64,000 bases of DNA from Macrostomum lignano (taxonomy: Eukaryota), in contig NIVC01001605.1 in assembly GCA_002269645.1 (NCBI GenBank), positions 1 through 64,000 of the forward strand, read 5' to 3'. Both the position numbers and the translations under genes were made by a program. Shown here piece by piece: positions 3,633 through 49,063 of this stretch (its first letter is position 1; every line of letters begins with the position of its first letter). Under the pieces are notes generated by a model, which had not been told where the DNA came from, did not search any database, and worked only from the letters and a program-made list of their open reading frames with translations.

Positions 3633-3720
3633 TACATTGATTGGAGACTTATCTTGTCTTTGAATTTTCTATAGTGGTGCATTTTTTCCTTTTTATATAC
3701 TTTGTAACTCTATATCTCCC

Positions 3721-13800: not shown

Positions 13801-14984
13801 GGGCGCCACAGTGATGGATGGGGCGCCACAGTGATGGATGGGGCGCCACAGTTATGGATGGGGCGCCACAGTTATGGATGGGGCGCCACAGTGATGGATG
13901 GGGCGCCACAGTTATGGATGGGGCGCCACAGTGATGGATGGGGCGCCACAGTTTTGGATGGATGGGGGCACCACAGTTTTGGATGGATGGGGGCACCACA
14001 GTTATGATGGATGGGGCGCCACAGTGATGGATGGATAGGGGCGCCACAGTGATGGATGGATAGGGGCGCCACAGTTATGGATGGGGGCGCCACAGTTATG
14101 GATGGGGGCGCCACAGTGATGGATGGGGCGCCACAGTGATGGATGGATAGGGGCGCCACAGTTATGGATGGGGGCGCCACAGTTATGGATGGGGGCGCCA
14201 CAGTGATGGATGGGGCGCCACAGTGATGAATGGATAGGGGCGCCACAGCTATGGATGGGGCGCCACAGTGATGGATGGATAGGGGCGCCACAGTTATGGA
14301 TGGGGGCGCCACAGTTATGGATGGGGGCGCCACAGTTATGGATGGGGGCGCCACAGTGATGGATGGGGCGCCACAGTGATGGATGGATGGGGCGCCACAG
14401 TTATGGATGGGGGCGCCACAGTTATGGATGGATAGGGGCGCCACAGCTATGGATGGGAGCGCCACAGTGATGGATGGATAGGGGCGCCACAGTGATGGAT
14501 GGATAGGGGCGCCACAGTTACGAGCGTATGGATGGGGGCGCCACAGTGATGGATGGATGGGGGCACCACAGTTATGGATGGATAGTGGCGCCACGTATGG
14601 ATGGATGGGGCGCCACAGATGAGGGCGCCAATTTACAGATGGGGGCCTATGACACATATGGACACAGACTGTTTAGATTTAGATAGCTATTTTCCGGAAT
14701 TAAGAAGGCAGCTGCGAAGCAAAAACCCGGAGCGTTGGACTCTGGATCGATATCGTAAAAATGCAATTAAATGGATGAAATGGGTGGCAGAGAATTCAAT
14801 AATCATCATTTTTATTTTATCGCACTGAAGCAGCCGCCCGAGAAGCAGACTCTGGCAAAATTGCACTTTTTGTGGTTTCAGGCGATCAGTTTCCTAGGCT
14901 TCGATTTCAAGAGAAGTTTTGTGTCAAATCCCCCGCGGGGAATTAATTCTCTCTCACTCTCTCTCTCTATCTCTCTCTCTCTCA

Positions 14985-16837: not shown

Positions 16838-23609
<6,772 letters not shown>

Positions 23610-23881
23610 TTACCAGCTTCTTACCTGCCAGACCATTCGGTGTGGCTTCAGATCCTACTATGACTCATCGATTTGTTATTTTACCGACTGACTTACCCAG
23701 GTATTTATGTTTAGAAATCCGTGTTTGTCTTTCTGCACCTTGCCCAATGCCCCTATCGCGCACCTGTGGCCCCAGCAACTGCGCCTGATTTTTTTATTTG
23801 TCTTAGGCTTGCACTTATATACATGTAATTCATTTTAATGCCGCTCTAGCCTCTCAGCTGTGCCTGCTTGGACAGTCTCAT

Positions 23882-24174
<293 letters not shown>

Positions 24175-24934: not shown

Positions 24935-25216
24935 GGGGTGGAATCTCACCCCTAGAAGCTAGGAAATCTCACTTCTAGAAGGTAGGAAATCTCACCCCTA
25001 GAAGCTGGGAAATCTCACCCCTAGAAGCTAGGAAATCTCACCCCTAGAAGCTAGGAAATCTCACCCCTAGAAGCTAGGAAATCTCACCCCTAAAAGCTAG
25101 GAAATCTCACCCCTAGAAGCTAGGAAATCTCACCCCTAGAAGCTAGGAAATCTCACTAGGAAATTTCCTAGCTAGGAAAGCTAGGAAAAGTCTGTCTGTC
25201 TGTCTGTCTGTCTATG

Positions 25217-25271
<55 letters not shown>

Positions 25272-25370
25272 GTCTGTCTGTCTGTCTGTCTTCTGTCTGT
25301 CTGTCTGTCTGTCTGTCTGTGTCTGTCTGTCTGTCTGTCTTCTGTCTGTGTGTCTGTCCTTCTGTCTGTT
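24935..25370. repeat. ~22-nt repeat GAAATCTCACCCCTAGAAGCTAG (24935-25190) followed by (TCTG)n (25191-25370)
   Basis: Direct tandem copies. Confidence 0.9.
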
Positions 25371-25991
25371 TTGTAGGCGCCTCATCTTTTTTGTGGTACT
25401 CAAGCTTCCAGTCCACTTGATATCTTCAGCTTTTCCTAGATATCCCTGACTCTCTCTGTCCAACCTTGTTCCCCTAATGCTGCTAAATGTTCCCTGCGAT
25501 CCCAAAACTTGGCTTTTCATGGCGACTAGATTCCCTGATCCCCATCCAACTAACTCTCTGCTCACTGCGAAATACCGGCCGTCATCAATTCTCTCTCCCA
25601 ACCCCCCCCCCCCAGCAGCTGCGGGTTTGAGTCCAAGGATTTTTATTGAACCCAGACTCTGGACTGTTTTTCTGGTTTCGACAGGAATTTTACAACTATT
25701 AAATTTGAATACATACAAAATTACTTGCATTTAACGAGTAAAATTGGTAATTTAAAATAAGCTGTTCCACCATATCATTTCGTGATGAAGACTATAGAGG
25801 AAAAAATCGTAAATTTCGTATTTTAAGACTGCATGTAGCTGTCATGGTATCACATGCATCTGTGACATACAGAACATGCAGCTTATTCAAATCTATAAAA
25901 ATTAATGAGGAGAAACTGCTCTGCGACTCCAGATACTTCTTTTAGATCGCCAGACAGCAACCTGCCACCCCCGCAATAGTTGTTAGTGGCC

Positions 25992-26077
25992 GTTTCCATT
26001 GGCAACTGGTGGCCCAGTGATTTGCCTCACCCCGTGCCGCCAACCCCATGCACAGAAGCGGGAGCCGCCGCTATAAA
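25992..26077 (+). promoter_or_regulatory. Promoter of paralog 1: X-box-like GTTTCCATTGGCAAC (25992-26006) and TATAAA (26072-26077)
   Basis: Both motifs are conserved upstream of all three paralogs; the TATA box lies ~89 nt before the ATG. Confidence 0.6.
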
Positions 26078-26160
26078 CCTGCAGTAAAGACAGGCAACTC
26101 ATCACAGCTCTTGACTGCTCACACAAGCTCAATTCCGGAAGCCAAAATCAAAGTTGCACC

Positions 26161-28004
26161 ATGACTGCAGCTAGCAGTGCAGCTCTGCTGGCTCTGCTGT
26201 CCGCCCTCTGCTGCCAGTCTGTCCGCTGCGCCACCTTCACGGTGCCGACTGTCAACCTCTGCGCTGTCGAACTGCCCCTTCCAGGTGCAACCAATGCCAC
26301 GTTCAAGGAGGTCTCCGGGGTCACGGATTATCGGATCTGCGCCGTGGAATGCGCAGCCAGAGGGCGGCTGAGTTGCTCCGTGTTCCAGATGCTGCATCCG
26401 GGAGACAAGGTCGGCTCGGTGACGCTGAGCAGCGGAAAGTGCGTGCTCGGCTCCTCGTGCGACCTCGCCGACAAGTGGAAGTCGGGCTCGGGCTGTCTGA
26501 CACAGCTGCTGGATAACCGGCCTGAATGCAGTGCGACCACAGCTGCAACAACTGCGACAACAACAACCGCAACTCCGACAACAACAACGACAACTCCAAC
26601 AACAACAACCACAACTCCGACAACAACAACGACAACTCCAACAACCACAACTCCAATAACAACAACGACAACTCCAACAACAACAACAACAACTCCAACA
26701 ACAACAACAACTCCAACAACAACAACAACTCCAACAACAACGACAACAACTCCAACAACAACAACGACAACTCCGACAACAACGACAACAAATCCGACAA
26801 CAACGACCACAACTGCGATTACAGCGATCACAACTTCGACAACAACAACCACAACTCCAACAACAACAACGACCCCAACTCCGACAACGACCCCAACTCC
26901 GACAACGACCACAACTCCAACAACAACGACCACAACTCCAACAACAACGACCACAACTCCAACAACAACAACCACAACTCCGACAACAACAACAACGACA
27001 ACTCCGACAACAACAACGACTGCTGCCCCACGTGTGTTGACCGGTGAGTTATTATTAGCTCAAGACTCAATTGAGTTTAAAACACAGAAATATTTTCCCT
27101 ACATGCAAGTGTTGAGATACAAGGTAGTCGAAATCTCATCGTTGTTTGATCTATTTTAAAAAGCAACCAGCTCGCTGAATCCAATGCAGCCCCGGTCGCT
27201 GCGACCACCCAGACGGGCAGCGTCGTGACCCATCCGATCGACGCCACCGGCTGCTACAAGATCAGCGCTTGGGGCGCTCGAGGCGGCAGAGCCGGCGGCT
27301 CCACGGTCGGCGGCAAGGGCGCCCTCGCATCCGGCTACTTCAGACTGGACGCCGGAGTCACGTTGGCGATTATCGTTGGCAAGGCCGGCAGCGACAAACT
27401 TGGCGGTGGAAATGACGCCGCTGGCGGCGGCGGTGGCACCTTCGTCCATGTCGACGGTATCGACACGTCGTCAGCGCTGCCGCTGGTTGCGGCCGGCGGC
27501 GGCGGCGGCAGCGGCTCCGGTGACGGCTGCGACGGAATCGACGGAAGCAGCGACCAGCCCGGGACCAGCGGCGGTGGCGACGGAGCGGGCGCTGGCGGCA
27601 CAGACGGCAACGGCGGCCAAGCGAGGACATCGGGCAAAGGAAACGGCGGCGCCGGTGCTGGTTGGTGGTCGGCAGGCGACGACGGCTCCGGCAATAAGAA
27701 GGGCCACGGCGGTGAGAGCTTCGGCAGCAGCTGGAGCGGCGGCGACGGCGACGACGCGTTTGGCGGCTACGGCGGCGGCGGCGGAGGCGGCGGCGGCGGC
27801 AGCAGCTCCGGCGGGGGCGGAGGCGGCGGCTTCTCGGGCGGCGGCGGCGGCTCGGGCAATTGCGGGGGTGGCGGCGGCGGCGGCAGCTTCGTAGCGACCG
27901 AGGCGACGAGCGTCGTGAGGACGAGCGGAGCGAACTCGGAGCCGAACGGTCGAGCGGAGGTGCAACTGGTTGGGCCGTCCACCGCACTGCCGTGTCTGCT
28001 CTGA
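26161..28004 (+). CDS. Secreted protein, paralog 1: signal peptide + PAN/apple-like Cys domain + Thr/Pro mucin stalk + ALK/LTK-type glycine-rich domain; exons 26161-27043, 27190-28004
   Basis: Hydrophobic N-terminus MTAASSAALLALLSALCCQSVRC; CAVEC..CSVF..KCVL Cys pattern; (PTTTTTT)n stalk. Phase-1 intron ACCG|GTGAGT..AATGCAG|CC. Exon 2 has YKISAWGARGG, GGKGALASGYFRLDAG..LAIIVGKAG, PLVAAGGGGG, GGYGGGGG, GGGGFSGGGGG, GGGGSF and GRAEVQL, as in the Gly_rich (PF12810-like) region of ALK/LTK. No transmembrane segment. Confidence 0.85.
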
Positions 28005-28295
28005 CGGGTCGAATTGACTCCAGAAAAAGAAGCTGGATGTTCGAGTTTTACAACATCACCATCTTCTCCTTAGTATCCTTATTACTAAGCTGAACTTTTG
28101 AATATAAGCAAATAACCTCGCACCACTTACCGTTGACAATTTTTACTGTTTTATGATAAAAACTAACGATTAAAGTTGGCATCAAATTTGTACTATCTGT
28201 TTGACTAAGAACTAAAATAAATAAATATACCATGCCGTGAACTATATCTTCGAGAATATTTTACCTTTCGGTCGCATAGATGTGTCTCTTGATTA

Positions 28296-29281
28296 CGAGG
28301 GGTGTCCAAAAAGTAGTGATACTTTCAACCGTAGCTCTCGTTCTATAGCTTCCTGTGATTTAAAATTTTATGAACTGATAGCGGCAAATCTCTTCTACAG
28401 ACTGCTTTTTGAATTTTTAAAATTGATACCAGAGAACAAAGTTATACCCACAAAAGTAACAGTACCTGTATCATTGAGTTACACAAACTATATCAAAATT
28501 TATGATAGTCGACTTCTGCACTTATTCATTAAGAAGGCATCGATAAATGTCTTGTTTAAGCAATACCAAAGCCCAATTGCAAAATTATGCTCACTGTGAC
28601 TGACTGAAATTTGTCTATGGACAGAATCATGCGCAGAAAAATAAAGCATTAAATTCATTACTTTACTTGCAAACAGAGGAGCTTGCATTTTGCAATTGAT
28701 TTCATTGCCCATACTCGACAACACACATGCATGTGCACTCAGTTGTTGCTCAGCAAAGTACCATCTTCACTCTTTGGGGTGCTGGCCATAGTGCCTCAGA
28801 AATTCACGCAAAACTTTGCTCTGCGCACGGATCCTCTGCGGTCAGCAAAATGACAGTTTATCGATGGATGGAGCAGTTCAGCGAGGGAAGGACTGACTTG
28901 GCAGAACAGCATCGGACGGGACGGCCATACATTCATCAACCTGATGTACTGGCGGACTCCATTCTGAATCTTCTTGACGAGAGGACTCCCGATTGACCAT
29001 TAGAGAGATTGCTGACAGGTTGGACAAGCCGAAATCAACAATTCATCGAAGCTTACTCAGCATGGATCTCGTGAAGCTCAGCCTATAATTTGTGTAACTC
29101 TATGGTACAGGTACTGTTACTTTTGTGGGTATAACTTTTGTTCTCTGGTATCAATTTTAAAAATTCAAAAAGCAGTCTGTAGAAGAGATTTGCCACTATC
29201 AGTTCATAAAATTTTAAATCACAGGAAGCTATAGAACGAGAGCTACGGTTGAAAGTATCACTACTTTTTGGACACCCTAAG
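28296..29281 (+). mobile_element. Internally deleted Tc1/mariner element with ~197-bp inverted ends and TA TSD
   Basis: TA|CGAGGGGTGTCCAAAAAGT start; 29084-29281 is the reverse complement of 28296-28492; TA at 28294-5 and 29282-3. The internal ORF SASEIHAKLCSAHGSSAVSKMTVYRWMEQFSEGRTDLAEQHRTGRP and downstream LTIREIADRL are mariner HTH domains. No DD34D domain. Confidence 0.88.
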
Positions 29282-30264
29282 TAGTCCAAAGTCCTAAGTA
29301 GTTTAAGGATTCCTAGCTAGGAGGAGGGCTATTTGATGATTTCAAATGCCTTTTTCGTGTTTCATTGATAAAATAATTTCTTATAATCGATAGTTTGTTT
29401 CACATTTACGCAAGCTTGGCACGTTGGGTTTTGGTTATCGACAATGAGTTATAAACAATTTTTGTACGCTTAGATTATGTTTACAATATAGATACGGACC
29501 TCAGAGCTTCGATAGTTTTCAGGTTTCTTGTACCACTTTCAACAAGCAGCATAGCTGATTTATCGCAGTTTCCAAGGTGATTGTTAATTCAAGCGGCTGT
29601 ATATTCTTGGTCAATTTCGTCTACCTGATCGGCATTAATATTCACTACTAACTCGCTCGCTCTGTACGTATATCCACGTTGCGTTGCCCATGAGCTTCGA
29701 ATGCTATATATGAGCATTAACTATTTCCCTCCACTGCAGAGCCGTTCTCTCGACCGCCGGGCTGATTGCTTATTCGTATTCTTCGTCATTAGCTCCCTCT
29801 CCTCAGTGTTTAGCTACTTCATTTACAAGAGATGGTTGCGTGAAATCTAAGCGTTCCTCGTTGCTGTGCTATTTGCTACTAATAGAAGCCAAATTCGTTT
29901 TTAGTAAATATTTGTTTAACTGTTCTGACAGTTAACAATAATATTCATTTTTGAGTTGAGTTCATTTTTGAACTGTAAAATAATATTTTACTATTAGGTT
30001 TGTTATGATGCTGCTAGTTTGTTTTAATTATACATATCTCAAAATTAATATATTGACTAGGTCTTTTGGATAGTATAAATAGATGCGAAGTGGCTAGTGA
30101 GCCAACCAACTTGTTGCACTGAGTATTGTTACCTTGTATCTTGTTTTCAACTTGTTTCAGTTAATCTTTTCAACTGTTTTCAAATAACCCTGAGACTTGG
30201 AAATCTTTTCGAAGAAGGAAATAGAATTAAGGAAGTCATACACTGTATATTCTAATGCCGGCAT

Positions 30265-31612
30265 ACATTGCCGGCAGACGTGAGCTTCAGCCTAGCACCA
30301 GTCAGCACAAGCCGACGTTGTGAAGCTCGCCCTACAGTCACCGGGCGGGAAAGCGCAGGGTCCGGACGAGGTGCCCATCGAGGCGCTGCGCATCCACTGT
30401 GTGGCCAGTGAGGGCGCCAGAGTGATGAATCGCGCGCTCTTCGGTGAGGAGGCACACAACAAATGGACCACGGCGCACATCGTCGCAGTTCCTAAGAAGC
30501 CGCGGGCACCACGAGGCTTGATGAGCATCGAGGTATCTGCATCCAGTCCTGCGCTGCGAAGTTGTTCAACCGGATGCTGCTATCGCGGTTGCAGCCCGTG
30601 CTGGATCCGTACCTGCGTTCTGAGCAGAACGGCTTTCGGCCACATCGCGGCACAGTGACGCACATTCTGGCTCTTCGGCGGGTCATCGAGGAAGCGCGGA
30701 TACGCCAGTTGATCCTGATTGTTATCTTCATAGATTTCAAGAAGGCATATTTGACTCGGTCGTCAGGTCTGTGCTTCCAAAGGTGCTCCGTGCGTAAAAC
30801 GTGCCAGAGCAGCTGATTTCCGCCATCATGGCGATGTACCCTGATACGAAAGCTGCTGTTTAAACACCGGACGGCCTATCGGACTTTTATGAGACATCCT
30901 CCGGGATGCTTCAGGGAGATACGCTTGCGCCGTTCCTGTTCGTTCTGGAGCTTGACTGGGTGCTGCGGACCGCTCTTCCTACCAACGACGACGGCTTTCT
31001 GTTGCGGCGACGCGTGGGTCGATGTCAACCGGAGAGGCGGTTTAGCGTGCTTGGCTACGCTGACGACATCGCCCTGCTGTCCTCAACTGTCGAGGGCGCC
31101 CAGCGACAAATGGACAAGCTAGTTGCTGTTGCGGCGAGTGTCGGCGTGGTGGTCATCGGCCTGGTGGACGACATCGAGACAGCGATTTTGTGCCGAGGCG
31201 CTGATGGACAGGCGACAAACTTCCGCGTGTCAGCAGTTCGTCTACCTCGGCGGTCTGGTTCCCGGCGTCTGCGAGGATTTGCGGCGTCGCCGCGGGCTTG
31301 CCTGGACTGCCTTTCGTTTCGCATGATGCTGGTCTGCTGCGCGCCGCCTTCAAGATCGGCTACTAGCGAGTGACCAACACGGCGCCGTCGTGGTCTGTCC
31401 AAGCGACCTGTTGCGCCGTCGGCGACTCCAGCTGGAAGACCACATCATCCACGACGAGTCGTACGCTGCTAACGCTGCTGCAGGCACCCTACCTGCGGGG
31501 GCAGGCGCGCACTCGGCGTTTCCTCGACTGCCCGCTGGCTGACGCCGGCGCCCCGGATTCGGCAGGCGGCGTGGCGTTCATTCGCGACCTGGCCTTGAAG
31601 CGCGCCCTGTGA
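30265..31612 (+). mobile_element. 5'-truncated, degenerate RTE/RTEX-like LINE (reverse transcriptase)
   Basis: Frameshifted pieces GKAQGPDEVPIEAL, RLQPVLDPYLRSEQNGFRPHRGT, FIDFKKAY, LQGDTLAPFLFVL and GYADDIALL. Same family as 61432-64000. Confidence 0.88.
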
Positions 31613-33636
31613 CGCTCACCGCATATTTTGTTGTTTTTTGTATTTACTAATGATACACAGAATACTAAGGAGATCGAATTGAAACGTAGTCGATCTTAGA
31701 AATAAGTATACAGTATTAAGAAGGCCGTGACCCTCTAATATTCGTAACGACTAAGGACTGGATGATTGAATACTTGGATACGAGCGTATCCACTGGGAAA
31801 TTCAAAACGAAGAGTTGTTCCAAGAGACACATTTACATGTGTAAGAACTTTCAGGCCAAATAGTAGACCGCTCGGTTACTAATTACGCTACCAGTAAGGA
31901 GTAAGAAATACTAGCTCAGATATATACTCAGACTTGTTCTCCAGACGTATTAGCCCTTTGATGTTAGCACTCAACTTCTCTATTCCTTTCCTAGTGTCTA
32001 GCAACAATGTTTCAATGGTGTCAATGTTCTGTCACACTCTCCTCCCATTGCTGTTATGCGGCCTATCGATTCTACGATAGGTGTCTCGTATTCTCCTTCA
32101 TGTCACCTCACAGAGGGCTTTGCATAGCGTTTCTATTTATAAGCGCTGCCTTTGTTCTATTGTGTCTGAACTGTCGCCTCTCTGACCTCCGAGCGCCTCT
32201 GCGCGCCCCGTTCCCAGCCTGACTCTCTTTCAAACACCAACTGCATTATAAAACATTGTGTACTTTTTTGGAGGCTGATTTCCTGGGAAAAAACACTGCA
32301 GAGATAAGAGAAAATGACTTTTTCATTACAGAATCAATACATGCTTACATTTGATGTGGGACAGTGTAGAGAGCCGCTAATCATACCGTATTGCACTACT
32401 TCAAGTAACATCTAAGAAAATCAATTAAAACTCGCAATCTATTTTTAGAATGAGTCATCATGCGTCATTCTATTTTAAAATATCTATTTTTAGAATGAGT
32501 CATGTGGAAACAGAAGTGACTCAGAGCCATACGTAGGACCAACGTTTATTTGATCAAGGAACTGGTTCTGGAGAGTTGTATTTGCTTAATTCCATATATG
32601 GTGATGATCAAACATTCATGACCCCTTAATCAAACACGCATGACCTAAATAAATAACCGGATTTTAAACCAGTTTTCACCAAAATTTTACCATAAATATA
32701 AGCGACTCGGAGCGGTCTCAAGGAAGACTTTGGAATCGTTAACTAAGAAGACCCATCTCTGAGAGAAGAAATCCTCAAAGAGATTGGTAAGCGTTACCCG
32801 ATTTAGTTCTTTGCTATAGCACTAATAAGTTGATTAATTGAGTTTACGAGAGCCACTTGTTGTCGACACATTTGAGAAAGGCCTCCTTGTTTCCTAGGAT
32901 ATATTCCTAGAGGATTATTGAGTTGATTTGAGTTATCCGTTACGTTTCGGACGTATCGAAGAAGACGCCCTTCAGGAGGACCTATTACAGAAAGTTAAAG
33001 AATTCAATTGTTCATAGGGGCGCACGTTCTATTGTTAATTCCGAGCTCGAGGACCGTCACAAGAATTCTGATTCGCACTCGTTTTGGTCGACCCACAGAT
33101 AAAGTTAAGGACTCCAGGAGACAACACAGCTGTTCACCGGAACCGGCCGCCACCGCTCAGCCAAGTCAGACAGCGCTACACACTACTCGTACAAGACCTC
33201 TGCAGTAAGAGTTATTCGAATTTGAAAATTCCTAGGCACTTGTTCCCCAGTGCCTAGGAGTGGGAGTTTTTGAGTGACTCATCACCACCCAATAAACTCT
33301 TCAACAGTATAAATTACCATTCTATTAATTTAGAATGCACACTCCAACCAATAAATTTGCGCTTAAGTTAGCAAAGTTGCAATCGCTGCAATCTTTTCTT
33401 CCTTTTTACATCAAGTATATTTGTAAAAAAAATTCGCATGCAGGTACTCTTAAGCCATGCAAGAATGCTAGTTATATTAACTAGACTAGAATATTAAATG
33501 TAGACAATTTATCAATATTGTTTTTCATATTGTTGTTGACCTATAGTCTTTGGAAAGCTTTTAATTTTTGAGCTAGGCCTAGTCCAGATTTTTATTACAA
33601 ATATACTTGATTTAAAAAGGAATAAATAAAAAATCA

Positions 33637-34770
<1,134 letters not shown>

Positions 34771-34789
34771 ACTCACACAGGAGTGTACA

Positions 34790-34988
34790 ACGGCCCTAAC
34801 TTTATTTTATCGTTAGGCATGTACACTTCACTGCGCCTTGGAGGGTTGGCTCTCAAGGCCGTTAATTGCACGAGCAGAGCCAAGCCGAGATTCCAATTCA
34901 GCCCCAAATTAATGTGACTGCACTTGGAATCGAGCCTGGGTCGCTGGCACACCAGAGCAGCTGCGCTACCGCTGGGCTACGGCCCCCC
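34790..34988 (-). mobile_element. tRNA-derived SINE
   Basis: The minus strand starts GGGGGCCGTAGCCCAGCGGTAGCG (A-box) .. GGCTCGATTCC (B-box variant) and ends in an A-rich ATAAAATAAA tail. Confidence 0.65.
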
Positions 34989-35581
34989 ACCGTGGCCCCT
35001 TTCTCCCTGCGAGAAGTGGCGTGGTGCAGGAGTCCGTTGACCTCGAGGTCAGGGTGCAGATTCACAGGATCTGCTACAGTTCATCCCCGGACTTGATGGC
35101 ACTGGCGGCCGGGATCCAGACGTGAAAGCACTGGGGCCCTTATTGCCGTAAAGACGAGTTTACCGAATAGAGATCAAATAAAAATCGACAAAGACGCCAA
35201 ACTTTGCTCGCATTTAAAGCATGAATGGTTCTGCCGAAACTATATACTAGTTGCAATGGTATTACATGCGTCTGCGACATGCAGAACATGCAGCTTCTTT
35301 AAATCTATAAAAACGAATAAGGGGGAACAACTGCTGTCCAACTCCAGATAAATCTTTTAGATCGCCATACAACAGCCTGCAACCCCAGCAAAAGTTGTTA
35401 GTCTCGTTTCCATCGGCAACTGGTGGCCCAGTAATTGGCCTCACGCCCTGCCGCCAATCCCCCCCCCCCCAGAACAGAAGCAGAGCAGCGGCTATAAACC
35501 TGTAGCAGCAAAGGCAGACAACTCATCTATAAGCTCTTGACTGCTCACACAAGCTCCGGAATCCAAAATCCAAGTTGCACC

Positions 35582-37746
35582 ATGACTGCAGCCCGCAGTG
35601 CAGCTCTGCTGGCTCTGCTGTCCGCCCTCTGCTGCCAGTCTGTCCGCTGCGCCACCTTCACGGTGCCAACTGTCAACCTCTGCGCTATCGAACTGCCCCT
35701 TCCAGGTGCAACCAATGCCACGTTCAAGGAGGTCTCCGGGGTCACGGATTATCGGATCTGCGCAGTGGAATGCGCGGCCAGAGGGCGGCTGAGTTGCTCC
35801 GTGTTCCAGATGCTGCATCCGGGAGACAAGGTCGGCTCGGTGACGCTGAGCAGCGGAAAGTGCGTGCTCGGCTCCTCGTGCGACCTCACCGATAAGTGGA
35901 AGTCGCAGTCGGGCTCGGGCTGTCTGACACAGCTGCTGGATAACCGGCCTGAATGCAGTGCGACAACAACGAAGACCGATTCGACCACAACTCCGACAAC
36001 AAAAACCACAACCCCGACAACAACGAGAACGACTCTGACAACAACAACGACAACTCCGACAATAACAACGGCCACAACACCGACAACAACGACAACGACT
36101 ACGACCACCCTGACCACAGCTCCGACAACAACAACGACCACAACTCCGACAACAACAAGGACCACAACTCCAACAACAACAACCACCTCAACTTCGATAA
36201 CAACGCCCACAACTCCGACAACAACAAGAAAAACTCCGAAAACAACAACGACAACTCCGACAACAACGACCACAACCCCGACAACAAAAACCGCTACCCC
36301 GACAACAACGAGAACGACTCCGACAACAAAAACAACCACAACTCCGACAACAACAACGACCACAACACCGACAACAACGACCACAACTCCGACAACAACA
36401 ACAATCAAAACTCCGACAAAAAAAAACAACCACAATTCCAAGAACAACACGAACAACTCCGACAACAACGACCACAACTCCGACAATAAAAACCACAACT
36501 CCGACAACAACAACGTCAACCCCGACAACAATGACCACAACTCCGACAACAACAACGTCAACCCCGACAACAATGACCACAACTCCGACAAGGAAAACAA
36601 CTCCGACAACAACAACAACCACAGCTCAGACAACAACGACCACAACTCCGACAACAACAACGACTACAACTCCGACAACGACGCCCACAACTCTGATAAC
36701 AACGACAACTCCTACAACAACAACAACGACAACTCCGACAACAACAACGACTGCTGCCCCGCAAGTGTTGACCGGTGAGTTATTTTTAGCTTAAGACTCA
36801 ATTGCGTTTAAAACACAGAAATATTTTTCTACATGCAAGTTTTGAGGTACAAAGTAGTCGAAATCTCATCGTTGTTTGATCTAATTTAAAAAGCAACCAA
36901 CTCGCTGAATCCAATGCAGCCCCGGCCGCTGCGACCACCCAGAGGGGCAGCCTCGTGACCCACTCAATCGACGCTACCGGCTGCTACAAGATCAGCGCTT
37001 GGGGCGCTCGAGGCGGCAGCGCCGGCGGCTCCACGGTCGGCGGCAAGGGCGCCCTCGCATCCGGCCACTTCAGACTGGACGCCGGAGTCACGCTGGCGAT
37101 TATCGTTGGCAAGGTCGGCAGCGACAAACTTGGCGGTGGAAATAACGCCGCTGGCGGCGGCGGTGGCACCTTCGTCTATGTCGACGGTAGCGACACGTCG
37201 TCAGCACTGCCGCTGGTTGCGGCCGGCGGCGGCGGCGGCAGCGGCTCCGGTGACGGCTGCGACGGAATCGACGGAAGCAGCGACCAGCCCGGGACGAGCG
37301 GCGGCGGCGACGGAGCGGGCGCTGGCGGCACAGACGGCAACGGTGGCCAAGCGAGGACATCGGGCAGAGGAAACGGCGGCGCCGGCGCCGGTTGGAGATC
37401 GGCAGGGGACGACGGCTCCGGCGGTAAGAAGGGCCACGGCGGTGAGAGCTTCGGCAGCAGCTGGAGCGGCGGCGACGGCGACGACGCGTTTGGCGGCTAC
37501 GGTGGTGGCGGCGGAGGCGGCGGCGGCGGCAGCAGCTCGGGCGGTGGCGGAGGCGGCGGCTTCTCGGGCGGCGGCGGCGGCTCCGGCAATTGCGGCGGCG
37601 GCGGCGGCGGTGGCAGCTTCGTGGCTACCGAGGCGACGAGCGTCGTGAAGACGAGCGGAGCGAACTCGGAGCCGAACGGTCGAGCGGAGGTGCAACTGGT
37701 TGGTCCGTCCACCGCACCGCCGTGTCTGCTCGACGGGTCGACTTGA
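35582..37746 (+). CDS. Secreted PAN-mucin-Gly-rich protein, paralog 2; exons 35582-36774, 36920-37746; longest stalk; +1 frameshift in an A9 run at 36418-36426
   Basis: Near-identical to paralog 1 in the PAN and Gly-rich parts with the same intron position. The Thr frame switches at the homopolymer. TATAAA at 35493-35498; GTTTCCATCGGCAAC upstream. Confidence 0.8.
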
Positions 37747-39909
37747 CTCAAGAAAAAGAAGCTGGATGTTCGAGTTTTACAACATCACATCTTCTCGAAA
37801 GTGTCAACTAAGCTGCTTCATACTAATTTACTAAGCTGAACTTTTTAAAGCCAAATAATTACCACCTACCGTTAATAATTTACCGTTTAAGACAAGGACT
37901 TTACGACGTGAACGGTTTAAGACGACAAACTGTTTTGTCGAAAGAAAATAAATAAATAAATAAATGAATAAATAAATAATACACCAGTGCACTAAAAACC
38001 CTGCTAATATCCTTACCTTTGGGTCGCATAAGCTGCCTAAATGATTTCTTATCTGATTAGTTAAAATATTGAAATAAAACTTGCTGTTATTACAATATTT
38101 TATGATAAAGCAAAATTAATATCCCTTTTTTCAGGTAAACAACTCCAAATGTTTCTGTGTAATAGTGTCGTCGTACTCAATCTTGTACGTCTTTAGCTTG
38201 GCCTCTCGGCTTGAGCGAGAATAGGAATAAGATCCTAACACTGTCTTCTTGAACAGTATGCATCTTGCTGCTGGAGGTTGGTTGCTGGGTTCCAACTGAG
38301 GAGCGCCCTTCATACCCCAAGCCAGAGGGAGGTTTTAGCTGCGAAGTTATCTTATATTCCTCTTCTCTGGTCAATTTTGTCTACCTTGGCATTAAAAGTG
38401 ACTGCTAAAACCACTGGGGAAGACAATTCGATGGATTGTCTTCAGGACTTCTCATCCCGACTCTATTCTTCTAAACTGCAAATAGTTTACGTCGTTTGAC
38501 AGGTGGAATTCACTGTTTCCTTTCACGTACATCATGCGCTTCCGAGCAATATAATTTTGTTACATCCACCGTTTCCAAGGTCGTAATTTGTGGAGCTACA
38601 ATGGGCATTTCTTTCGGCGCCATTGCTGACTCGTTTGGATCCCAATAAACTCGCTTCCAGAACTGCGTTGCCCTTAGCTTCGAATACTATATTTGAGCAT
38701 TAACCTTTCCCTCCACTGCAGAGCGGCTCTCTCGACCATCCGGGTGACTGCTTCTTACCACGTCAGCTCGGCCTCCCTAACCTCAATGTTTACAGTGTAC
38801 TTCAGTCATGAGAGATATATAGTTGCGGGAAATCTTAAGCGTTTCTTGTTAGCACTCAACCTCTCTATTCTTTTCCTAGTGTCTGATAACAATGTTTCTA
38901 TGGGGTCACTAAGCTGTCACTCAGTCTCCCATTACTGATATGGCCCTGTCGATTCTTTATCTTTCTTAATTTCTATGGGGTCACTAAGCTGTCACGCAGT
39001 CTCCCATTACTGATATGGCCCTGTCGATTCTATCCTTCAAGTCCCCTCTACAGAGGTTTGCATAGCGTTTCTATTTAAAAGCCCTGCCTTTGTTTTATTG
39101 TGTCAGAACTGTCGGCGCCTCTCTGATCTCCGAGCGCCTCTGTGCCCCCAGTTCCCAGCCTGCCTGAAACATCGTGTCATTTTTGGAGGCCAGTTTCTTT
39201 CAAAAACACGGAGGGATAAGAAAAAACTATTTCTTCATTACAAAACCAATTCTTTCAATTTAGCATGCACAGCATGTTGTTCTGTAGTATTTTATAGAGA
39301 TGTGCATTAAAAGTTTCATTTTCATATTGATGAATTATGAATTAATTTATATTTTCATAATTCATCAGATTAGCTATCCTGTCCTAATCTCAAGACCTGT
39401 CTAAATTATTAAATTAATACATGTAAGCTGAGTTCTCAACTGAGCAGCATTAAACAGCCGCCAAACTGTGTACACAACTTTCCTCGAATCTCCCATGCAA
39501 GTTTCACTTGCACAGCTCACACTCGGCACCGTGGGGGCATACATTACATAATCAACAAGCTGAGAAATTGGGTGCAACACAAGAAGGATGATAAAATTGT
39601 TTCATTTAGTTTTGTAAGCCCCACAGCAACATTCGACCTTCGAAACACTGTTGACTCTAGAAAAAGAGTTCTACAATATCACCATCTTCTTCTCCCTGCT
39701 AAGTGTCCTTTGGCTTTAATTTTCAAAGCTAATTAATTACCTGCATGCAGTTACCGTTGAAAACTTTCACCGTTTTAAGAGAGGAACTGTACCTTGAACG
39801 GTTCAATCAATATCAAATTTCTGCTTTCCACGGGGTATTTCGAAGGAAAATAAGATTCATAAATATACCAGTGCTCTAGAAACCTCGAGAATATTTTACT
39901 TTTCAGTCA

Positions 39910-40750
39910 CTTGACTTACTCGAGCTAGCGAGCTGCAGGGTGGTCCGTAGACTCAGCGGGGAGGTCGCCCATTCCGCTAGCCCCTGAAAGCCCGCAGACA
40001 GGCAGAGGGCAGGTCAAGGTGGTCCCCCGGTCCGTCCTGCAGCGTGATCTTCCGTAGGGGACAAAGTGGCTCGTATTGTCGCCCGAAGCAAACTGGATGA
40101 GCCGTGGGATGCTGGCGGGCTGGCAGACCTCGTCAATGGACGGAATCGGCCCGAGGTAGCGTAGCCGGTCTCTGTTGAAGAAAAAGCTGTCAAAGACAAA
40201 GTGCTCAGAACATTCGTTGTCGTATTCGCAAAAAGGTCAAAGTTCACATTCGAGGTCTCCTTGGATTAAGCAGTGTCTGGAGAGGTAGCCATGACCGGTA
40301 AGTGTCATGACCTGAGCGCGAATGTCCTTCCGGTTTTTGGTTCAGAAGGACCTTTCTGAGCCTGCGGGAGGGGCACGGAGCCGTTGCACGTGATTTCCGG
40401 CAGTTCTGGCTGCCCGCCCATCTGTGCCTGTGAGGGGAATCAGCCCAGTTATTGATCTGACGATTGATGACCGTAGAAGGGATAGGGGAACAGGGCTAGA
40501 GAAGGGGCCAGAGCCGCGTCTCTTGCAAGGGTGTCTGCCAACTCGTTCCTCGAAAACCTGCTTGATCTGGGATCCATTTCAGTCTGACAGTATTGCTACT
40601 GGCCAGGAGGTTGAGCTGCCGGGCGCAGTCAGCGACTATCCGGGACATCGCTGGTTGGCATCCAGCCGGGCTTGTTTCCTGGGGGGAGGGGAGGGGGGCA
40701 GGGGTCGCTATGGTTTTTTTTTTGGACCGACAGCAGCAGCCTCCCAAGGT
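39910..40750 (-). mobile_element. Second, more degenerate RNase H-bearing LINE 3' fragment
   Basis: SRIVADCARQLNLLASSNTVRLKWIPDQAGFRG resembles RNase H (V.L.WVPGH.GI.GNE). The 3' end (ACTTGACTTA..GAGCTGCAGGG) resembles 33655-33680. Confidence 0.55.
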
Positions 40751-41414
40751 TCCCCTGTAATATCTAACAATAAGTGCTGACTAACAGAACACTGTAATTA
40801 CTTGAGCAAGTAAGAATCTTAACACGACGACTGTGCGTTTCTATTTGCACCAAATAATAAATTACCTCAAGATTGAAAATAAAGAATAATATCTACTTAT
40901 TCTACATTTGCATATTTGTTTACTTTTAGTAGAGTAGTCAGAACACTTTGCAAATGCTTACATTTTCATTAATTAGTAAAATACGTCTGGCCGGAGGGCT
41001 CGCGGATGCGCGTCCAGGTTTGTCGCCAGACAAAAGGGCGGCGCTGGCGCCAGAATCACCGGCTGGAGTTGCCGGGGTCCCGGCTTCAGTGGATTACTTG
41101 AGGCGGTAAAAAATATTTCCTATTTCTAAGAAGTATCCTATTTTCAAGAAACATCCCATTTCTAAGAAATATTTCGGCACCATGGCCTGCTGCATGGCAC
41201 TGATTGGTCTGTCTGGCATTCCCTACCTGTCCACCGATCTGCTCACTATTGGCTACAGATTCGCTGGCCTGGGGATGTGTGGCTACGGCCAGTGAATCAT
41301 CTGGGCATTGCGCCACGACTTTCTTTCTTCTTGATGGGACTGTCCAATGGCCTTGACACCGTTTCATGTGTCTGTGCGATAGCTTTTCGTTGGGGTTTCG
41401 AGGCCTGGTAGGAT

Positions 41415-41772
41415 GCAGATTTGGGGATGTGCAGATTGAAGAATGTGCAGATTGGGGAATGTGCAGATTGGGGAATGTGCAGATTGGGGAATGTGCAAAT
41501 TGGGGAATGTGCAGATTGGGGAATGTGCAGATTGGGGAATGTGCAGATTGGGGAATGTGCAGATTGGGGAATGTGCAGATTGGGGAATGTGCAGATTGGG
41601 GAATGTGCAGATTGGGGAATGTGCAGATTGGGGAATGTGCAGATTGGGGAATGTGCAGATTAGGGAATGTGCAGATTGGGGAATGTGCAGATTGGGGAAT
41701 GTGCAGATTGGGGAATGTGCAGATTGGGGAATGTGCAAATTGGGGAATGTGCAGATTGGGGAATGTGCGGAT
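41415..41772. repeat. 16-nt G-rich minisatellite GGGGAATGTGCAGATT
   Basis: About 22 near-perfect copies. The 16-aa periodic ORFs equal three units. Confidence 0.95.
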
Positions 41773-42429
41773 TTGACATTCGACTAGCAAAGAGGCGAGC
41801 GCACACGCAGCACAGATGAGCAAAGAGCAGGGAATGTGCTCACAAAGAGTTCAAGGCAGCTCTGACTGTATCATGTTCAAGTAATGTAGACACTCTGAAT
41901 AGCCTTCATGTGCACTACTCGCGGTGAAAAGTCCCATGTCTTTTTTGTGCGACAGCCTCAAAAAGATTAATGTGGCCGCGCACTTTCAATCTGAGGCATT
42001 TTCCAATTTTTCTGCAAGGAATCTTCGAAAACTTGACTTAAGGCTCCAAATTTAAAAAAAAAACAAGACTATGGATAGCCTTGTCTTTAGAAAGCTATCA
42101 ATTTTTTAAGCTAAGGCCTAGCTTAAGGCTAAGAGTACTTGCAGTCAACATTTTTTTACAAATATTCAAGTAGATTCAGGATAGAAGAAGTTTGCAACTT
42201 TTGGCTTGGGGTGATGAAATACTCGTAAATACAACAGATTGGCATGCTTTGCATGTTAAATTAAGACAGATTTCGGCGATTTTTTCACCTCGATGGTCAG
42301 ATAAAGAATTTAGTTCATGGCTGAGAAAGTGGGGGGGAGGGGTATTTACCTTCATCAGAAACACTACACATGTAGCAGGGATTTTGCGTATTATGCTTCA
42401 TCAATTTTTGTTCCTGTTCTCTGAAGTTG

Positions 42430-42700
42430 TTTGATTAAGTTCTCAAGGATTAATAGGGATCGAGCGCGAGCAAATGAAATGCTCAGCAGCATTAAAAGTT
42501 GCCACATTTTGCCTCAGTCACAGACCAATAAGTATTCAGGCATTCAGGTTTCAGCCTTCTTGGATGTGCCGCACACGTTGAAGCTGATTCGAAACCATTG
42601 GCAGTCCCTGGCAATATTTTTTCGCCGAACAGAGGAAATAGTGAATGTAAATTTGTGTGGATGCTGCAGCAAGTACAGGAAAGCCACGGACTCAGACTGG
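42430..42700 (+). mobile_element. P-element/THAP9-type transposase relic
   Basis: ANEMLSS..QVSAFLDVPHTLKLIRNHW matches the D-x-x-H-x-x-K-L-x-R-N motif of P-element transposases. No TIRs were identified. Confidence 0.6.
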
Positions 42701-44169
42701 GCAATAAGTTTTTCTCAACATTTAGGGAGCGGCTGGTGCATGCCGGAGATGGGATAAATTTATATAAATAAATTAATATAATTTATACGCTCGTAGTCTT
42801 AGAACCAGGTGAAGGTGAGCGTAGCTATTCATGTACTCTTATTGGTGTTTGTATTCTATCTGCAACAACAAGAAAGGCCTCATTTTGTCTTACAAGTGTT
42901 TATTTTTGTTTTTGATCAATATGGGTAAACCAATAAAATAATGCTGCCCATTTAAACTGTTTAATTGCACATAAAGTTTGGGATAAATGGTTAGAAATCC
43001 ATATCCCACGGCAAAAGGCAACAATAATACAACAGGCCCCATGTTTGAGGGGTAGGAAGCGAAGCCCTTGTTATCGATCGTCAGGAGGTGGGAGCTGGGG
43101 TACTTGGTCTGGTTATTACTTATTTGTCTGTGGCCTCAGTAAGCAAATTCCCTTGGATCTCCCATGCAAGTTGTAAAACTCACACTTTACACCGCGATGG
43201 CCTTTTGTAGGGAGAGCAGTAGAAAATAGACCAAGAACAACAACTTTTTAAGAAGAATCACACGCAAGTTTTGTAGTTGTTTTCGTAATAAATTGACAGA
43301 TTGACTAATTGTAGTAAATGCCTATAGTTTATATACATATAGCGACACTGTTTTGCGATATTTGAACGTGTCAAATTATGGTTTATAGTTTCATTTAACT
43401 GGGAAAGTTTAAATTCACGTCTTCATTTAACTTATACATGATCATAATAATGTCAAAGTGCCCAGATTTTGCTCAACGTCGGTCTAACGATTGACTTATA
43501 AGGTATTAACCTAGCTATTAAAACTCAGAATTACATTACTCTGTAACACTGTTACGATAAAAATAGCCTTAGATAATCAATTAGCACACTGTCTGCTTCC
43601 CACTCCGTCACTAAGCCGTCCAACCCCTCATCAAATTATAAATAAGAAAAAACGACGCACCTAACTTGAATCACCGAGACGCTGCAGGGGTTCATAAAAC
43701 TTGAATAGAGCTTAGATACATAAAATTATCTCCTAAGCCTTGGGTAAGTGATCGGGGGTAGGGCAGGTCTAGTGCCATGCTTCATCAGGATCTCAGCAAG
43801 GGCATTTGTAGCAGCTGCGAGTATATGACTGCCCCACTGCTGCCAAATGATCCTAACCATCCAATTAGTAGGGGGCTGTCCCACCCCCTAGTCACCGTTG
43901 AATACAGGCAAAGCATTCATATGGCTCCGGTGCTGTTATCTCTCTGCTGTGATGGAGCAGAGAGGCGCGCCCCACCCAGCCGCAATATTTGTTAGTGGCC
44001 GTTTCCATTGGCAACTGGTGGCCCAGTGATTTGCCTCACCCCGTGCCGCCAACCCCATGCGCAGAAGCAGGAACCGCCGCTATAAACCTGCAGTAAAGAC
44101 AGGCAACTCATCACAGCTCTTGACTGCTCACAGAATCTCAACTCCGGAATCCAAAATCCAAGTTGCATC

Positions 44170-45629
44170 ATGACTGCAGCTAGCAGTGCAGCTCTGCTGG
44201 CTCTGCTGTCCGCCCTCTGCTGCCAGTTTGTCCGCTGCGCCACCTTCACGGTGCCGACTGTCAACCTCTGCGCTGTCGAACTGCCCCTTCCAGGTGCAAT
44301 CAATGCCACGTTCAAGGAGGTCTCCGGGGTCACGGATTATCGGATCTGCGCCGTGGAATGCGCAGCCAGAGGGCGGCTGAGTTGCTCCGTGTTCCAGATG
44401 CTGCATCCGGGAGACAAGGTCGGCTCGGTGACGCTGAGCAGCGGAAAGTGCGTGCTCGGCTCCTCGTGCGACCTCGCCGACAAGTGGAAGTCGCAGTCGG
44501 GCTCGGGCTGTCTGACGCAGCTGCTGGATAACCGGCCTGAATGTAGTGCGACCACGGCTGCAACAACTGCGACAGCAACGACCGCAACTCCGATTACAGC
44601 GATCACAACTTCGACAACAACGACCACACCTCCGACAAAAACAACGACTGCTGTCCCACAAGTGTTGACCGGTAAGTTTTTGTTATCTTAATGCACAATT
44701 GCTTTTAGATATAACCAAAACATTTTCCTAGCTCGTACATGCGTGTTAATAAAAAGTAGCTCAAATCTCATTGTCGCTTAATCTCATTTAAAAAGCAACC
44801 AATTCGCTGAATCCAATGCAGCCCCGGCGGCTGCGACTACCCAGACGGGCAGCCTCGTGACCCATCCGATCGACGCCACCGGCTGCTACAAGATCAGCGC
44901 TTGGGGCGCTCGAGGCGGCAGCGCCGGTGGCTCCACGGTCGGCGGCAAGGGCGCCCTCGCATCCGGCTACTTCAGACTGGACGCCGGAGTCATGCTGGCG
45001 ATTATCGTTGGGAAGGTCGGCAGCGACAAGCTTGGCGGTGGAAATGACGCCGCTGGCGGCGGCGGTGGCACCTTCGTCTATGTCGACGGTATCGACACGT
45101 CGTCAGCGCTGCCGCTGGTCGCGGCTGGCGGCGGCAGCGGATCCGGTGACAGCTGCGACGGAATCGACGGAAGCAGCGACCAGCCCGGGACCAGCGGCGG
45201 CGGCGACGGAGCGGGCGCTGGCGGCACAGACGGCAACGGCGGCCAAGCGAGGACATCTGGCAGTGGAAACGGCGGCGCCGGCGCCGGTTGGTGGTCGGCA
45301 GGCGACGACGGCTTCGGTGGAAAGAATGGTCGCGGCGGTAAGAGCTTCGGCAGCAGCTGGAGCGGCGGCGACGGCGACGACGCGTTTGGAGGCTACGGAG
45401 GCGGCGGCGGAGGCGGCGGCGGCGGCAGCAGCTCCGGCGGGGGCGGAGGCGGCGGCTTCTCGGGCGGCGGCGGCGGCTCGGGCAATTGCGGGGTGGCGGC
45501 GGCGGCGGCAGCTTCGTAGCGGCCGAGGCGACGAGCGTCGTGAGGACGAGCGGAGCGAACTCGGAGCCGAACGGTCGAGCGGAGGTGCAGCTGGTTGTGC
45601 CGTCCACCGCACTGCTGTGTGTGCTGTGA
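44170..45629 (+). CDS. Secreted PAN-mucin-Gly-rich protein, paralog 3; exons 44170-44671, 44822-45629; very short stalk; 1-nt deletion in a G run near 45492
   Basis: Same architecture and intron as paralogs 1 and 2. TGCGGGGTGGC here versus TGCGGGGGTGGC in paralog 1. After the shift the frame reads GSFVAAEATSVVRTSGANSEPNGRAEVQLVVPSTALLCVL*. TATAAA at 44081-44086. Confidence 0.78.
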
Positions 45630-48001: not shown

Positions 48002-49063
48002 ATGGGCCGAATTCTGCAGGACATTGACTTGAAAAACCTGGCCAACCGGCTTCTTACCTTTGATGTTGACGATGTTGAGAATCACGTGCCGCTCACTGCG
48101 GCTGAGTGCCTGTCCGTCTGTCACATGGCCGTCGAGGCTATGAGATCCACAGACATCTGCATCCACATCAAGACGCCAATCAACATTGTGGGCGACTTGC
48201 ACGGCCAGTTCCACGATCTGCTTCGAATATTCGACGCGCTCGGCCAGCCGCCCGAGTCGCGCTTTCTGTTCCTCGGCGACTACATCGACCGAGGCAAGTA
48301 CTCGCTCGAGGTGATGACGCTGCTGTTTGTGCTGATGCTGCTGTATCCGAACTCGGTGTACCTGCTTCGAGGCAACCACGAGACGGCCAACATCTGCTGC
48401 AGGTACGGATTCAAAGACGAAATCGGGATGCGGTTTATCAAAGCGCAGGCGCACAAAGTGCTTGGTGGATTCGTCAGAACCTTCCAATGGATGTCGATGT
48501 GCGCAATTATAGATGGCCAGATCTTCTGCTGTCACGGCGGCATCTCGCCGAGCTACATGCTGCAACCCTTTAACCTACGAGGCGGACAGCAGGCCAATGT
48601 CCAGGCGTTGAACGAGTCCAAGAAGCCAGTGGAACCGTCTAGACCCAGCGTTTTGTGCGACATCATCTGGGCGGATCCCATGAGCGGCGTAATGAATGTG
48701 CAGTTCAGCCCGACGTCGGAGAGTCTCACTGAGGCCAAGTGGCTGCCAAATAAACGCGGCTGCTCCTTCATGTTCTCGGGCGTAGCATTGGAGGAGGTGA
48801 TGCGGATGTTCCAGACCCAAATGCTGATTCGGGGTCACCAAGTCGCACAAAATGGTTTTTTGACGCACCACAATCGACGCTGCGTCACCGTATTTAGCGC
48901 GCCAGGCTACTGTGGTGTCTACAACAACGCGTGCAGCATCCTGCAGGTGGACCGCATGGTAGACAACAATCGACATCCAGGCAGCTTTTTTATTATCAGA
49001 CCGACGCACAGGGACGCAGCCGCAATTAACAACCTGTTCTGGACTGAGCTCAGAGACATTTAA
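48002..49063 (+). CDS. Intronless divergent PP1-like Ser/Thr protein phosphatase (PPP family), 353 aa
   Basis: All PPP metal/catalytic motifs are present: GDLHGQ, GDYIDRG, RGNHE, HGGISP, DIIWADP, NKRG, RGHQ and FSAPGYC (canonical SAPNYC). Confidence 0.93.
   Translation: MGRILQDIDLKNLANRLLTFDVDDVENHVPLTAAECLSVCHMAVEAMRSTDICIHIKTPINIVGDLHGQFHDLLRIFDALGQPPESRFLFLGDYIDRGKYSLEVMTLLFVLMLLYPNSVYLLRGNHETANICCRYGFKDEIGMRFIKAQAHKVLGGFVRTFQWMSMCAIIDGQIFCCHGGISPSYMLQPFNLRGGQQANVQALNESKKPVEPSRPSVLCDIIWADPMSGVMNVQFSPTSESLTEAKWLPNKRGCSFMFSGVALEEVMRMFQTQMLIRGHQVAQNGFLTHHNRRCVTVFSAPGYCGVYNNACSILQVDRMVDNNRHPGSFFIIRPTHRDAAAINNLFWTELRDI

Follow-up and report, generated by a model that had tools for sequence, protein, structure and literature searches.

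The TNF-like/glycine-rich (TG) domain, a polyglycine-II lattice domain that corresponds to Pfam family PF12810, provides the ligand-binding region of the receptors ALK and LTK, in which it is followed by an epidermal growth factor (EGF)-like domain (PMC10605310). The domain is common in bacteria and viruses, yet it has no assigned function beyond ALK and LTK, and outside these receptors the family is known but uncharacterised. Our literature search on glycine-rich, mucin and apple proteins of Macrostomum lignano, on PF12810 and on flatworm ALK returned nothing relevant except one remark in a fungal genome paper that nothing points to a function for PF12810 proteins. Here, we analysed positions 1-64000 of contig NIVC01001605.1 from the M. 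lignano assembly GCA_002269645.1 (Mlig_3_7), a 64 kb stretch referred to below as the window, and find that it carries three tandem paralogs that are real two-exon genes, lineage-specific to this flatworm. Their predicted products are secreted proteins in which a TG domain follows a Cys-rich module and a mucin-type Thr/Pro stalk.

A similar layout is seen in the LET-653-type PAN/apple-mucin matrix proteins of Caenorhabditis elegans, where a Cys-rich PAN-type module is connected through a Ser/Thr-rich mucin linker to a C-terminal assembly or binding domain. In LET-653 this last domain is a ZP domain and not a TG domain, and the likeness to the worm proteins described here is one of layout without implied homology.

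Results

Gene structure of the array

When the window was searched by tblastn with the N- and C-terminal modules of copy 1, three paralogous units were found, at 26161/27189, 35582/36934 and 44170/44848. The ATGs that an earlier note on this DNA had placed at 26161, 35582 and 44170 were thereby recovered, and no further locus was matched. All copies lie on the forward strand and share the same order of elements: a TATA box, a signal peptide, an 8-Cys module, a Thr/Pro tract, a phase-1 GT-AG intron, a glycine-rich exon of about 270 aa and a stop. The splice donor (GACCG followed by the intron start GTRAGT) and the acceptor (CCAATGCAG directly before exon 2) are common to the three window copies, and both motifs were kept in 5/5 copies examined, the other two being copies on paralogous contigs in which the gene model and the TATA box are conserved as well. 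Side-by-side comparison of the upstream regions revealed the motif GCTATAAACC about 88 bp before the ATG in all three window copies. By blastn, similarity between the copies is limited to the gene itself plus flanks of about 200-300 bp on the 5' side and about 60 bp on the 3' side (84-95% identity), and the spacers of 6-7 kb each are mutually unrelated.

In copy 1, the TATAAA box within this motif lies at 26072..26077, about 88 bp 5' of the ATG. The spliced product, obtained by joining 26161-27043 to 27190-28004, is an open frame of 565 aa that shows the order which the earlier note had described, from signal peptide through 8-Cys module and Thr/Pro stalk to the glycine-rich module. The predicted signal peptide (MTAASSAALLALLSALCCQSVRC) is encoded at 26161..26229, with a cleavage site placed by the -3/-1 rule, the 102-aa Cys module at 26230..26535, and the Thr/Pro tract at 26536..27043, where exon 1 ends. 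The phase-1 intron of 146 bp (27044..27189), assigned from the conserved splice motifs, is followed by exon 2 (27190..28004), which contains the TG domain and a TGA stop, and a pattern search gave a candidate poly(A) signal, AATAAA, at 28216..28221. The GC content is 36% in the intron, 63% in the N-terminal coding part and 73% in exon 2.

Exon 1 of copy 2 (35582..36774) encodes a signal peptide, the Cys module and about 35 stalk repeats and contains a +1 frameshift, and its exon 2 (36920..37746) is an intact TG-domain open reading frame (ORF) with 95% protein identity to copy 1. Exon 1 of copy 3 (44170..44671) encodes a signal peptide, the Cys module and a stalk of only 3.8 repeats, and its exon 2 (44822..45629) encodes a TG domain with a 1-nt deletion, as judged by comparison with copy 1 and with the two copies on paralogous contigs (L005 and L006). 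The NCBI record has no gene call at copy 3.

The C-terminal TG domain

Residues 295-565 of copy 1 consist of 35% Gly. Searched as a single sequence against Pfam, the domain scored 13.5 bits against PF12810 (E=0.073), below the cut-off of 24.5, and it is likely that this sub-threshold score results from a penalty on the strong glycine bias; the paralogs P0027 and P0083 scored 23.8 and 21.1 bits. A single-sequence phmmer search of the Protein Data Bank (PDB) reached ALK at E=0.0019, on the TNF-like part. A database search gave 730 relatives of the domain, several of them already annotated as PF12810. The best of these were bacterial, about 300 aa long and in many cases equipped with a PEP-CTERM, MYXO-CTERM or type IX secretion system (T9SS) tail; the relatives also included a choanoflagellate protein and two M. 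lignano proteins. A family profile built from 83 sequences matched ALK (2.9e-30), LTK (4.2e-27) and SCD-2 (6.9e-17) in the PDB, and these matches spanned both the TNF-like and the glycine-rich parts.

Structure prediction pointed in the same direction. The AlphaFold 2 (AF2) model of the domain had a predicted local distance difference test (pLDDT) score of 92 and a predicted template modelling (pTM) score of 0.91, with strands at both ends (TG residues 10-101 and 239-261). The region in between, residues 102-238, contained no helix or strand by secondary-structure assignment (DSSP) at a pLDDT of 83-98, a picture that a polyglycine-II lattice would be expected to give in DSSP. A Foldseek search of the PDB with the model returned 21 matches at E<0.001, all to ALK, LTK or SCD-2, with E down to 2.5e-9 and template modelling (TM) scores of about 0.6 over nearly 300 columns, and nothing beyond these three below E=1. 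Among predicted viral structures, the model matched phage and giant-virus proteins with TM scores of 0.72-0.76 and about 30% identity, at E down to 2.6e-14, including cyanophage proteins named 'virion structural protein', and the domain matched phrog_22713 over its whole length (E=2.6e-21). On the strength of the profile and the model, the C-terminal module is an ALK/LTK-type TG domain, as the earlier note had proposed.

The TG domain is much nearer to stand-alone versions than to ALK. It scored 102 bits with the bacterial PEP-CTERM protein P0001, 78 and 67 bits with other worm subfamilies and 21 bits with human ALK. In a distance tree of 84 sequences, a rough neighbour-joining tree on a glycine-rich alignment, it paired with the M. 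lignano protein A0A1I8IMG2 within a bacterial PEP-CTERM group, and human ALK was the most distant sequence. It follows that across life the fold normally occurs as a stand-alone domain, as in bacteria, phages, giant viruses and a choanoflagellate, and that the receptor is the special case. A scan of bacterial genome context by glycine-run pattern gave four uninformative loci.

In all copies, a stop in frame follows 10-14 residues after the TG domain (about 10 after the last strand in copy 1), and the 565-aa protein had no match in Pfam besides the sub-threshold one to PF12810 and hence no match to an EGF-like, MAM or LDLa domain. The absence of a transmembrane or kinase part that the earlier note had reported was borne out by this stop and by hydropathy, which is high at the N terminus only. 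As regards splicing onward into a membrane or kinase exon, one of the outcomes that the note had named as overturning its reading, fragments of HTH_48 and RVT_1 were all that the ORFs further downstream yielded. A single kinase is encoded in the window, a Ser/Thr kinase about 6 kb upstream of the array (17.8-19.8 kb) that is not a receptor kinase.

The N-terminal module and the stalk

The sole 19-residue hydrophobic stretch in the 565 aa of copy 1 (mean Kyte-Doolittle hydropathy above 1.6) lies in residues 1-23. Since this segment is N-terminal only, it is read as a signal peptide, and no membrane anchor is predicted. Residues 24-125 contain 8 Cys and one N-glycosylation sequon. The Cys module alone had no match in a word-indexed search and no sequence match in the PDB. 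An exhaustive phmmer search of 1.84 billion representative proteins gave one true relative, A0A1I8IMG2 (P0121), with 58% identity (E=8.7e-20); the other three matches to the N-terminal module were rejected as low-complexity or repeat artefacts (giant PKD and DUF11 proteins and one repeat protein). P0132 (UPI0007A20D54, 1892 aa), an older gene model of M. lignano, joins an A0A1I8IMG2-type protein to two pyruvate-kinase-like stretches and a repeat tail and is a chimeric prediction. A profile search with a mixed N-terminal alignment recovered only the A0A1I8HRN4-type paralogs that were already in that alignment, and the direct comparison of the Cys module with this subfamily by hhalign was not significant (E=0.38), so that no homology is claimed.

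The earlier note had called this module PAN/apple-like. The count of eight Cys is correct, and the PAN label is an interpretation rather than an observation: the module had no PAN match in Pfam even at E<=10, so of the Pfam matches that the note had expected, only PF12810 appeared, and that below threshold. The relative A0A1I8IMG2, which bears an apple-domain name as a label given by UniProt, has PAN_1 as its sole Pfam match, at 13.3 bits (E=0.079) and below the cut-off of 21.4. The core pattern of C-x3-C-x7-C with an aromatic residue and a fourth Cys is present (C-AVE-C-AARGRLS-C-SVFQ...GK-C-VLG), and hhalign placed this stretch in register with the plasminogen PAN sequence EC-AAK-C-EEDEEFT-C-RAFQ at P=0.0047 and a probability of 7%. 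AF2 on a five-sequence alignment yielded no usable fold (pLDDT 35.5). The HGF N domain, tried as another possible relative, gave nothing in hhalign. A PAN/apple-like identity of the module is plausible but unproven.

The stalk of copy 1 comprises residues 126-294 (169 aa; 77% Thr and 14% Pro) and contains 23 copies of a 21-bp repeat encoding the seven residues TTTTTTP, found by Tandem Repeats Finder at 26548-27017. The number of repeats is 23 in copy 1, about 35 in copy 2 and 3.8 in copy 3. With a predicted signal peptide and an in-frame tandem repeat rich in Pro/Thr/Ser (PTS), the protein has the features of secreted mucin-type proteins; by composition, the stalk is a classical mucin-type tract.

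Reading frames and selection

As assembled, copy 1 is the sole intact copy in the window (1/3), and the other two (2/3) are out of frame, a feature absent from the earlier note, whose three two-exon units otherwise stand. Exon 1 of copy 2 is 1193 nt long (two more than a multiple of three); it has one extra base, and the shift occurs at an A9 run at 36418-36426 within the repeat tract. In copy 3, the frame is lost at a G4 run at 45490-45493 that is G5 in copy 1, L005 and L006, and the shifted frame stays open through the conserved C terminus as far as the orthologous stop (45627-45629). Copy 3 has intact counterparts on NIVC01001474.1 (L005, 440 aa) and NIVC01003194.1 (L006, 434 aa). They lie at 5447-6917 and 3171-4622 on the respective contigs and differ in stalk length. 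L006 is almost identical to window copy 3 (synonymous divergence, dS, 0.012), and in L005, which is further away (dS about 0.08), the glycine-rich part carries deletions.

The length of exon 1 is 883, 556 and 496 nt in the intact copies and 502 nt in copy 3, and these lengths differ by multiples of 3. The same phase of exon 1 despite very different repeat numbers indicates a coding constraint on the family. Pairwise ratios of nonsynonymous to synonymous divergence (dN/dS) were 0.14-0.53 in the TG exon and 0.09-0.71 in the N-terminal part, mostly 0.15-0.35, and exon 2 of copy 2 gave 0.24 against copy 1. These data show that the family is under purifying selection.

Short-read polishing is unreliable in multi-copy sequence. 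The assembly was made from PacBio reads with Canu and polished with short reads (PMC5730564). Since each broken copy carries one lesion, each in a homopolymer, in a PacBio assembly and in multi-copy sequence, the frameshifts of copies 2 and 3 may be assembly errors; they may also be recent real mutations.

The dS between copies is 2-5x lower in the 5' coding part (26161-26535; 0.02-0.07) than in the TG exon (27192-28001; 0.11-0.21), which suggests gene conversion at the 5' end or else effects of alignment or mutation in the GGC-rich exon.

Other features of the window

The Ser/Thr protein kinase upstream of the array has two exons (17826-18329 and 19315-19842, forward strand) and is SNF1/AMPK-like by eye. 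A phosphomevalonate kinase exon at 1181-1636 (forward strand) belongs to a host gene unrelated to the array. Downstream of copy 1, an inverted repeat of 193 bp, with arms at 28300-28492 and 29084-29277 that are 97% identical, encloses an ORF (28727-28996) with the HTH_48 domain of Mos1 transposase, and the unit resembles a truncated mariner-type element inserted close behind copy 1. Between copies 1 and 2 there are also frame-broken reverse transcriptase fragments (30320-31612, forward strand; RVT_1 below threshold), which fit decayed retroelement debris, and an ORF at 33634-34203 on the reverse strand for which no Pfam match was found.

Beyond the array, an intronless PP1-type metallophosphatase of 353 aa (48002-49063, forward strand) is present as an identical protein on NIVC01001605.1, NIVC01001474.1 and NIVC01003194.1, in line with the recent genome duplication of M. 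lignano. A GIY-YIG nuclease-domain ORF of 249 aa (50609-51358, forward strand) possibly belongs to a Penelope-like element. A Ty3/Gypsy-type retrotransposon occupies 53850-59856 on the reverse strand, with a 1616-aa pol ORF (reverse transcriptase, RNase H and integrase) and a 363-aa gag-like ORF upstream of it. In the NCBI record, a gene of 835 aa is the sole call in this region. Mini- and microsatellites are dense in the window (11608-12291, 13872-14657, 23875-24174, 25000-25369 and 41414-41773). The tract at 11608-12291 has a period of about 24 bp by eye and reads as an open 'SAMDYQIM' frame; the others include (GTCT)n blocks, a 23-bp repeat present 6.8 times and a 16-bp repeat present 22.5 times, and several yield long spurious ORFs on both strands.

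Discussion

The predicted products of the array combine features of mucins with a domain known from the ALK and LTK receptors. On balance, we think it fairly probable, judging from the sequence features, that they are secreted mucin-type glycoproteins that act extracellularly as a two-ended linker or adhesin. After cleavage of the signal peptide, the N terminus of the protein would be the disulfide-rich 8-Cys module, possibly of the PAN/apple-like type. The Thr/Pro tract, variable in length, would be densely O-glycosylated and form a stiff spacer, and the C-terminal TG domain would offer a TNF-like beta-sandwich bearing a rigid glycine-rich lattice, the fold that ALK and LTK use for ligand binding. 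The molecule would thus carry a globular module at each end of an extended stalk and have no membrane anchor. By analogy with the display of TG proteins on the bacterial envelope and the phage particle, the TG end would be a binding or self-associating surface, and the site of action may be mucus, a surface coat or a gland secretion.

Several observations weigh against this proposal. Cleavage of the signal peptide and dense O-glycosylation of the stalk are both deduced from amino acid composition, the Cys module has no usable predicted fold, and the assembled sequence breaks the frame of copies 2 and 3. An exact look-up among 15 billion collected proteins did not find the spliced products; the genes are thus unannotated, and their transcription is only predicted. 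Furthermore, in the literature we found no paper on the expression, localisation or binding of these genes or of any stand-alone TG protein.

A wider reading takes the TG fold to be an ancient mobile extracellular binding module from which the ligand-binding region of ALK and LTK was drawn, and the worm genes to be glycan- or microbe-binding mucus lectins. The distribution of the domain on bacterial surfaces and phage virions and in giant viruses, choanoflagellates and flatworms belongs to this reading, in which exon shuffling at the phase-1 intron may have brought a bacterial-type gene together with a mucin exon. We consider it doubtful as a whole; if it is true, Macrostomum would offer the first animal TG proteins outside receptors that can be studied by experiment.

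The lectin idea can also be held by itself, in the form of a microbe-binding mucus lectin or agglutinin in innate defence, whose family expands and varies as it tracks microbial surfaces. The tandem arrangement with its varying repeat number, the several divergent subfamilies in M. lignano that combine a Cys module with a TG domain, and the relatives on bacterial and phage surfaces would all fit such a role. No sign of positive selection was seen, dN/dS being below 1 throughout, and no TG domain has a known carbohydrate-binding activity, which makes a defence lectin unlikely in our view; it would moreover be a special case of the linker/adhesin proposal and not a true alternative to it. We also judge it improbable that a specialised gland (adhesive, shell, prostate or rhabdite) secretes the proteins as structural material, in which the glycine lattice would be a self-assembling block and not a recognition surface. 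A mucin-like stalk and a rigid glycine-rich domain suit this function, and apical-matrix proteins show a comparable succession of a Cys module, a mucin linker and an assembly domain at the C terminus. Against it, our literature search found nothing on this family and, to our knowledge, the known adhesive proteins of M. lignano are different proteins.

It is very unlikely that the array consists of decaying, non-functional pseudogene duplicates, even though copies 2 and 3 carry frameshifts, no annotated protein matches and copy 3 is uncalled in the NCBI record. Intact frames are present in copy 1 and in the two counterparts that copy 3 has on paralogous contigs, each broken copy has a single homopolymer lesion with a frame that is still open downstream of it, the dN/dS values of 0.15-0.35 speak for constraint, and the reading frame has been preserved through changes in repeat length. 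Just as little credence can be given to the suggestion in the earlier note of a soluble decoy or ligand scaffold in the ALK pathway, in which the free TG domain would capture a worm ALK ligand of the Jeb/HEN-1 type or present it to an ALK receptor. The fold is that of the ligand-binding region of ALK and LTK, but the domain lies far nearer to the stand-alone versions of bacteria and viruses (102 bits against P0001 and a viral TM score of 0.76) than to human ALK (21 bits), which is the most distant of the 84 sequences in the tree. In addition, no EGF-like domain follows the TG domain as it does in ALK and LTK, ALKAL ligands are restricted to vertebrates, and Jeb and HEN-1 are LDLa proteins (PMC10605310). 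The proteins are not part of an ALK receptor and are probably unrelated to ALK signalling. Two further candidates are ruled out, an ordinary ALK-like receptor by the lack of a transmembrane segment, kinase or EGF-like domain, and contaminant bacterial DNA by the intron, the TATA box, the animal genes and retroelements nearby and the counterparts, the locus being represented on three contigs.

The family is of interest beyond the flatworm and would bear on the origin of the ALK ligand-binding region. M. lignano is amenable to RNA interference and transgenesis (PMC5730564), and a small family of secreted TG proteins in such a host provides a practical route to a non-receptor role of the fold. 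The genes are missing from public protein sets, and the automatic name 'receptor protein-tyrosine kinase' on worm and viral fragments is an annotation error that is worth flagging. This name is carried by M. lignano fragments of about 190 aa and by many phage and giant-virus proteins, all without a kinase domain, and A0A1I8GEH1 has been auto-named 'PE-PGRS family protein'. Both the 'kinase' and the 'PE-PGRS' names are artefacts of domain- or composition-based naming.

Comparison with known systems

In the ALK, LTK and SCD-2 receptors (PDB 7NX1, 7NX3, 7LRZ, 7N00 and 7LIR), the TG domain is homologous to that of the worm proteins and has the same fold, and in the worm domain, as in alignments of ALK, terminal beta-strands flank a long insert rich in glycine. 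Only about 25% of residues are identical to ALK. Unlike the receptors, the worm proteins have no EGF-like domain, transmembrane helix, kinase or MAM/LDLa domains, and they are predicted to be secreted, with a Cys module and a mucin stalk preceding the TG domain in the same chain.

The nearest relatives of the TG domain by sequence are bacterial PF12810 surface proteins (P0001, P0003 and P0005; 40-50% identity, E down to 1e-23). P0001, with a signal peptide and a PEP-CTERM anchor, is extracellular as the worm proteins are predicted to be. In contrast to the worm genes, the bacterial ones encode a C-terminal sorting signal for anchoring in the envelope and lack the intron as well as any Cys module or mucin stalk. 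The glycine-rich proteins of phages and giant viruses (phrog_22713; A0A0P0YMU3 and A0A2H4JH33 in BFVD) have the same fold and superpose better than ALK, and differ in that the domain occurs in other contexts, in virion or uncharacterised proteins.

Closest in architecture are proteins of M. lignano itself. The architecture, which the earlier note did not recognise as a characterised family, is not entirely without precedent, as UniProt already lists proteins of this species that join a Cys module to a TG domain. In A0A1I8IMG2 and A0A1I8HRN4, both named 'Apple domain-containing protein', the Cys module lies N-terminal of the TG domain, as here, and the same order is given for A0A1I8GEH1 and for the fragments auto-named 'receptor protein-tyrosine kinase'. 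All these entries are unreviewed and uncharacterised and have no Thr/Pro stalk. The N-terminal modules of A0A1I8HRN4 and A0A1I8GEH1 are not demonstrably homologous to the Cys module of the window. In A0A1I8IMG2, whose TG domain lies closest in the tree, the Cys module runs straight into the TG domain. What sets the predicted proteins of the array apart from this nearest relative is the mucin stalk inserted between the two modules.

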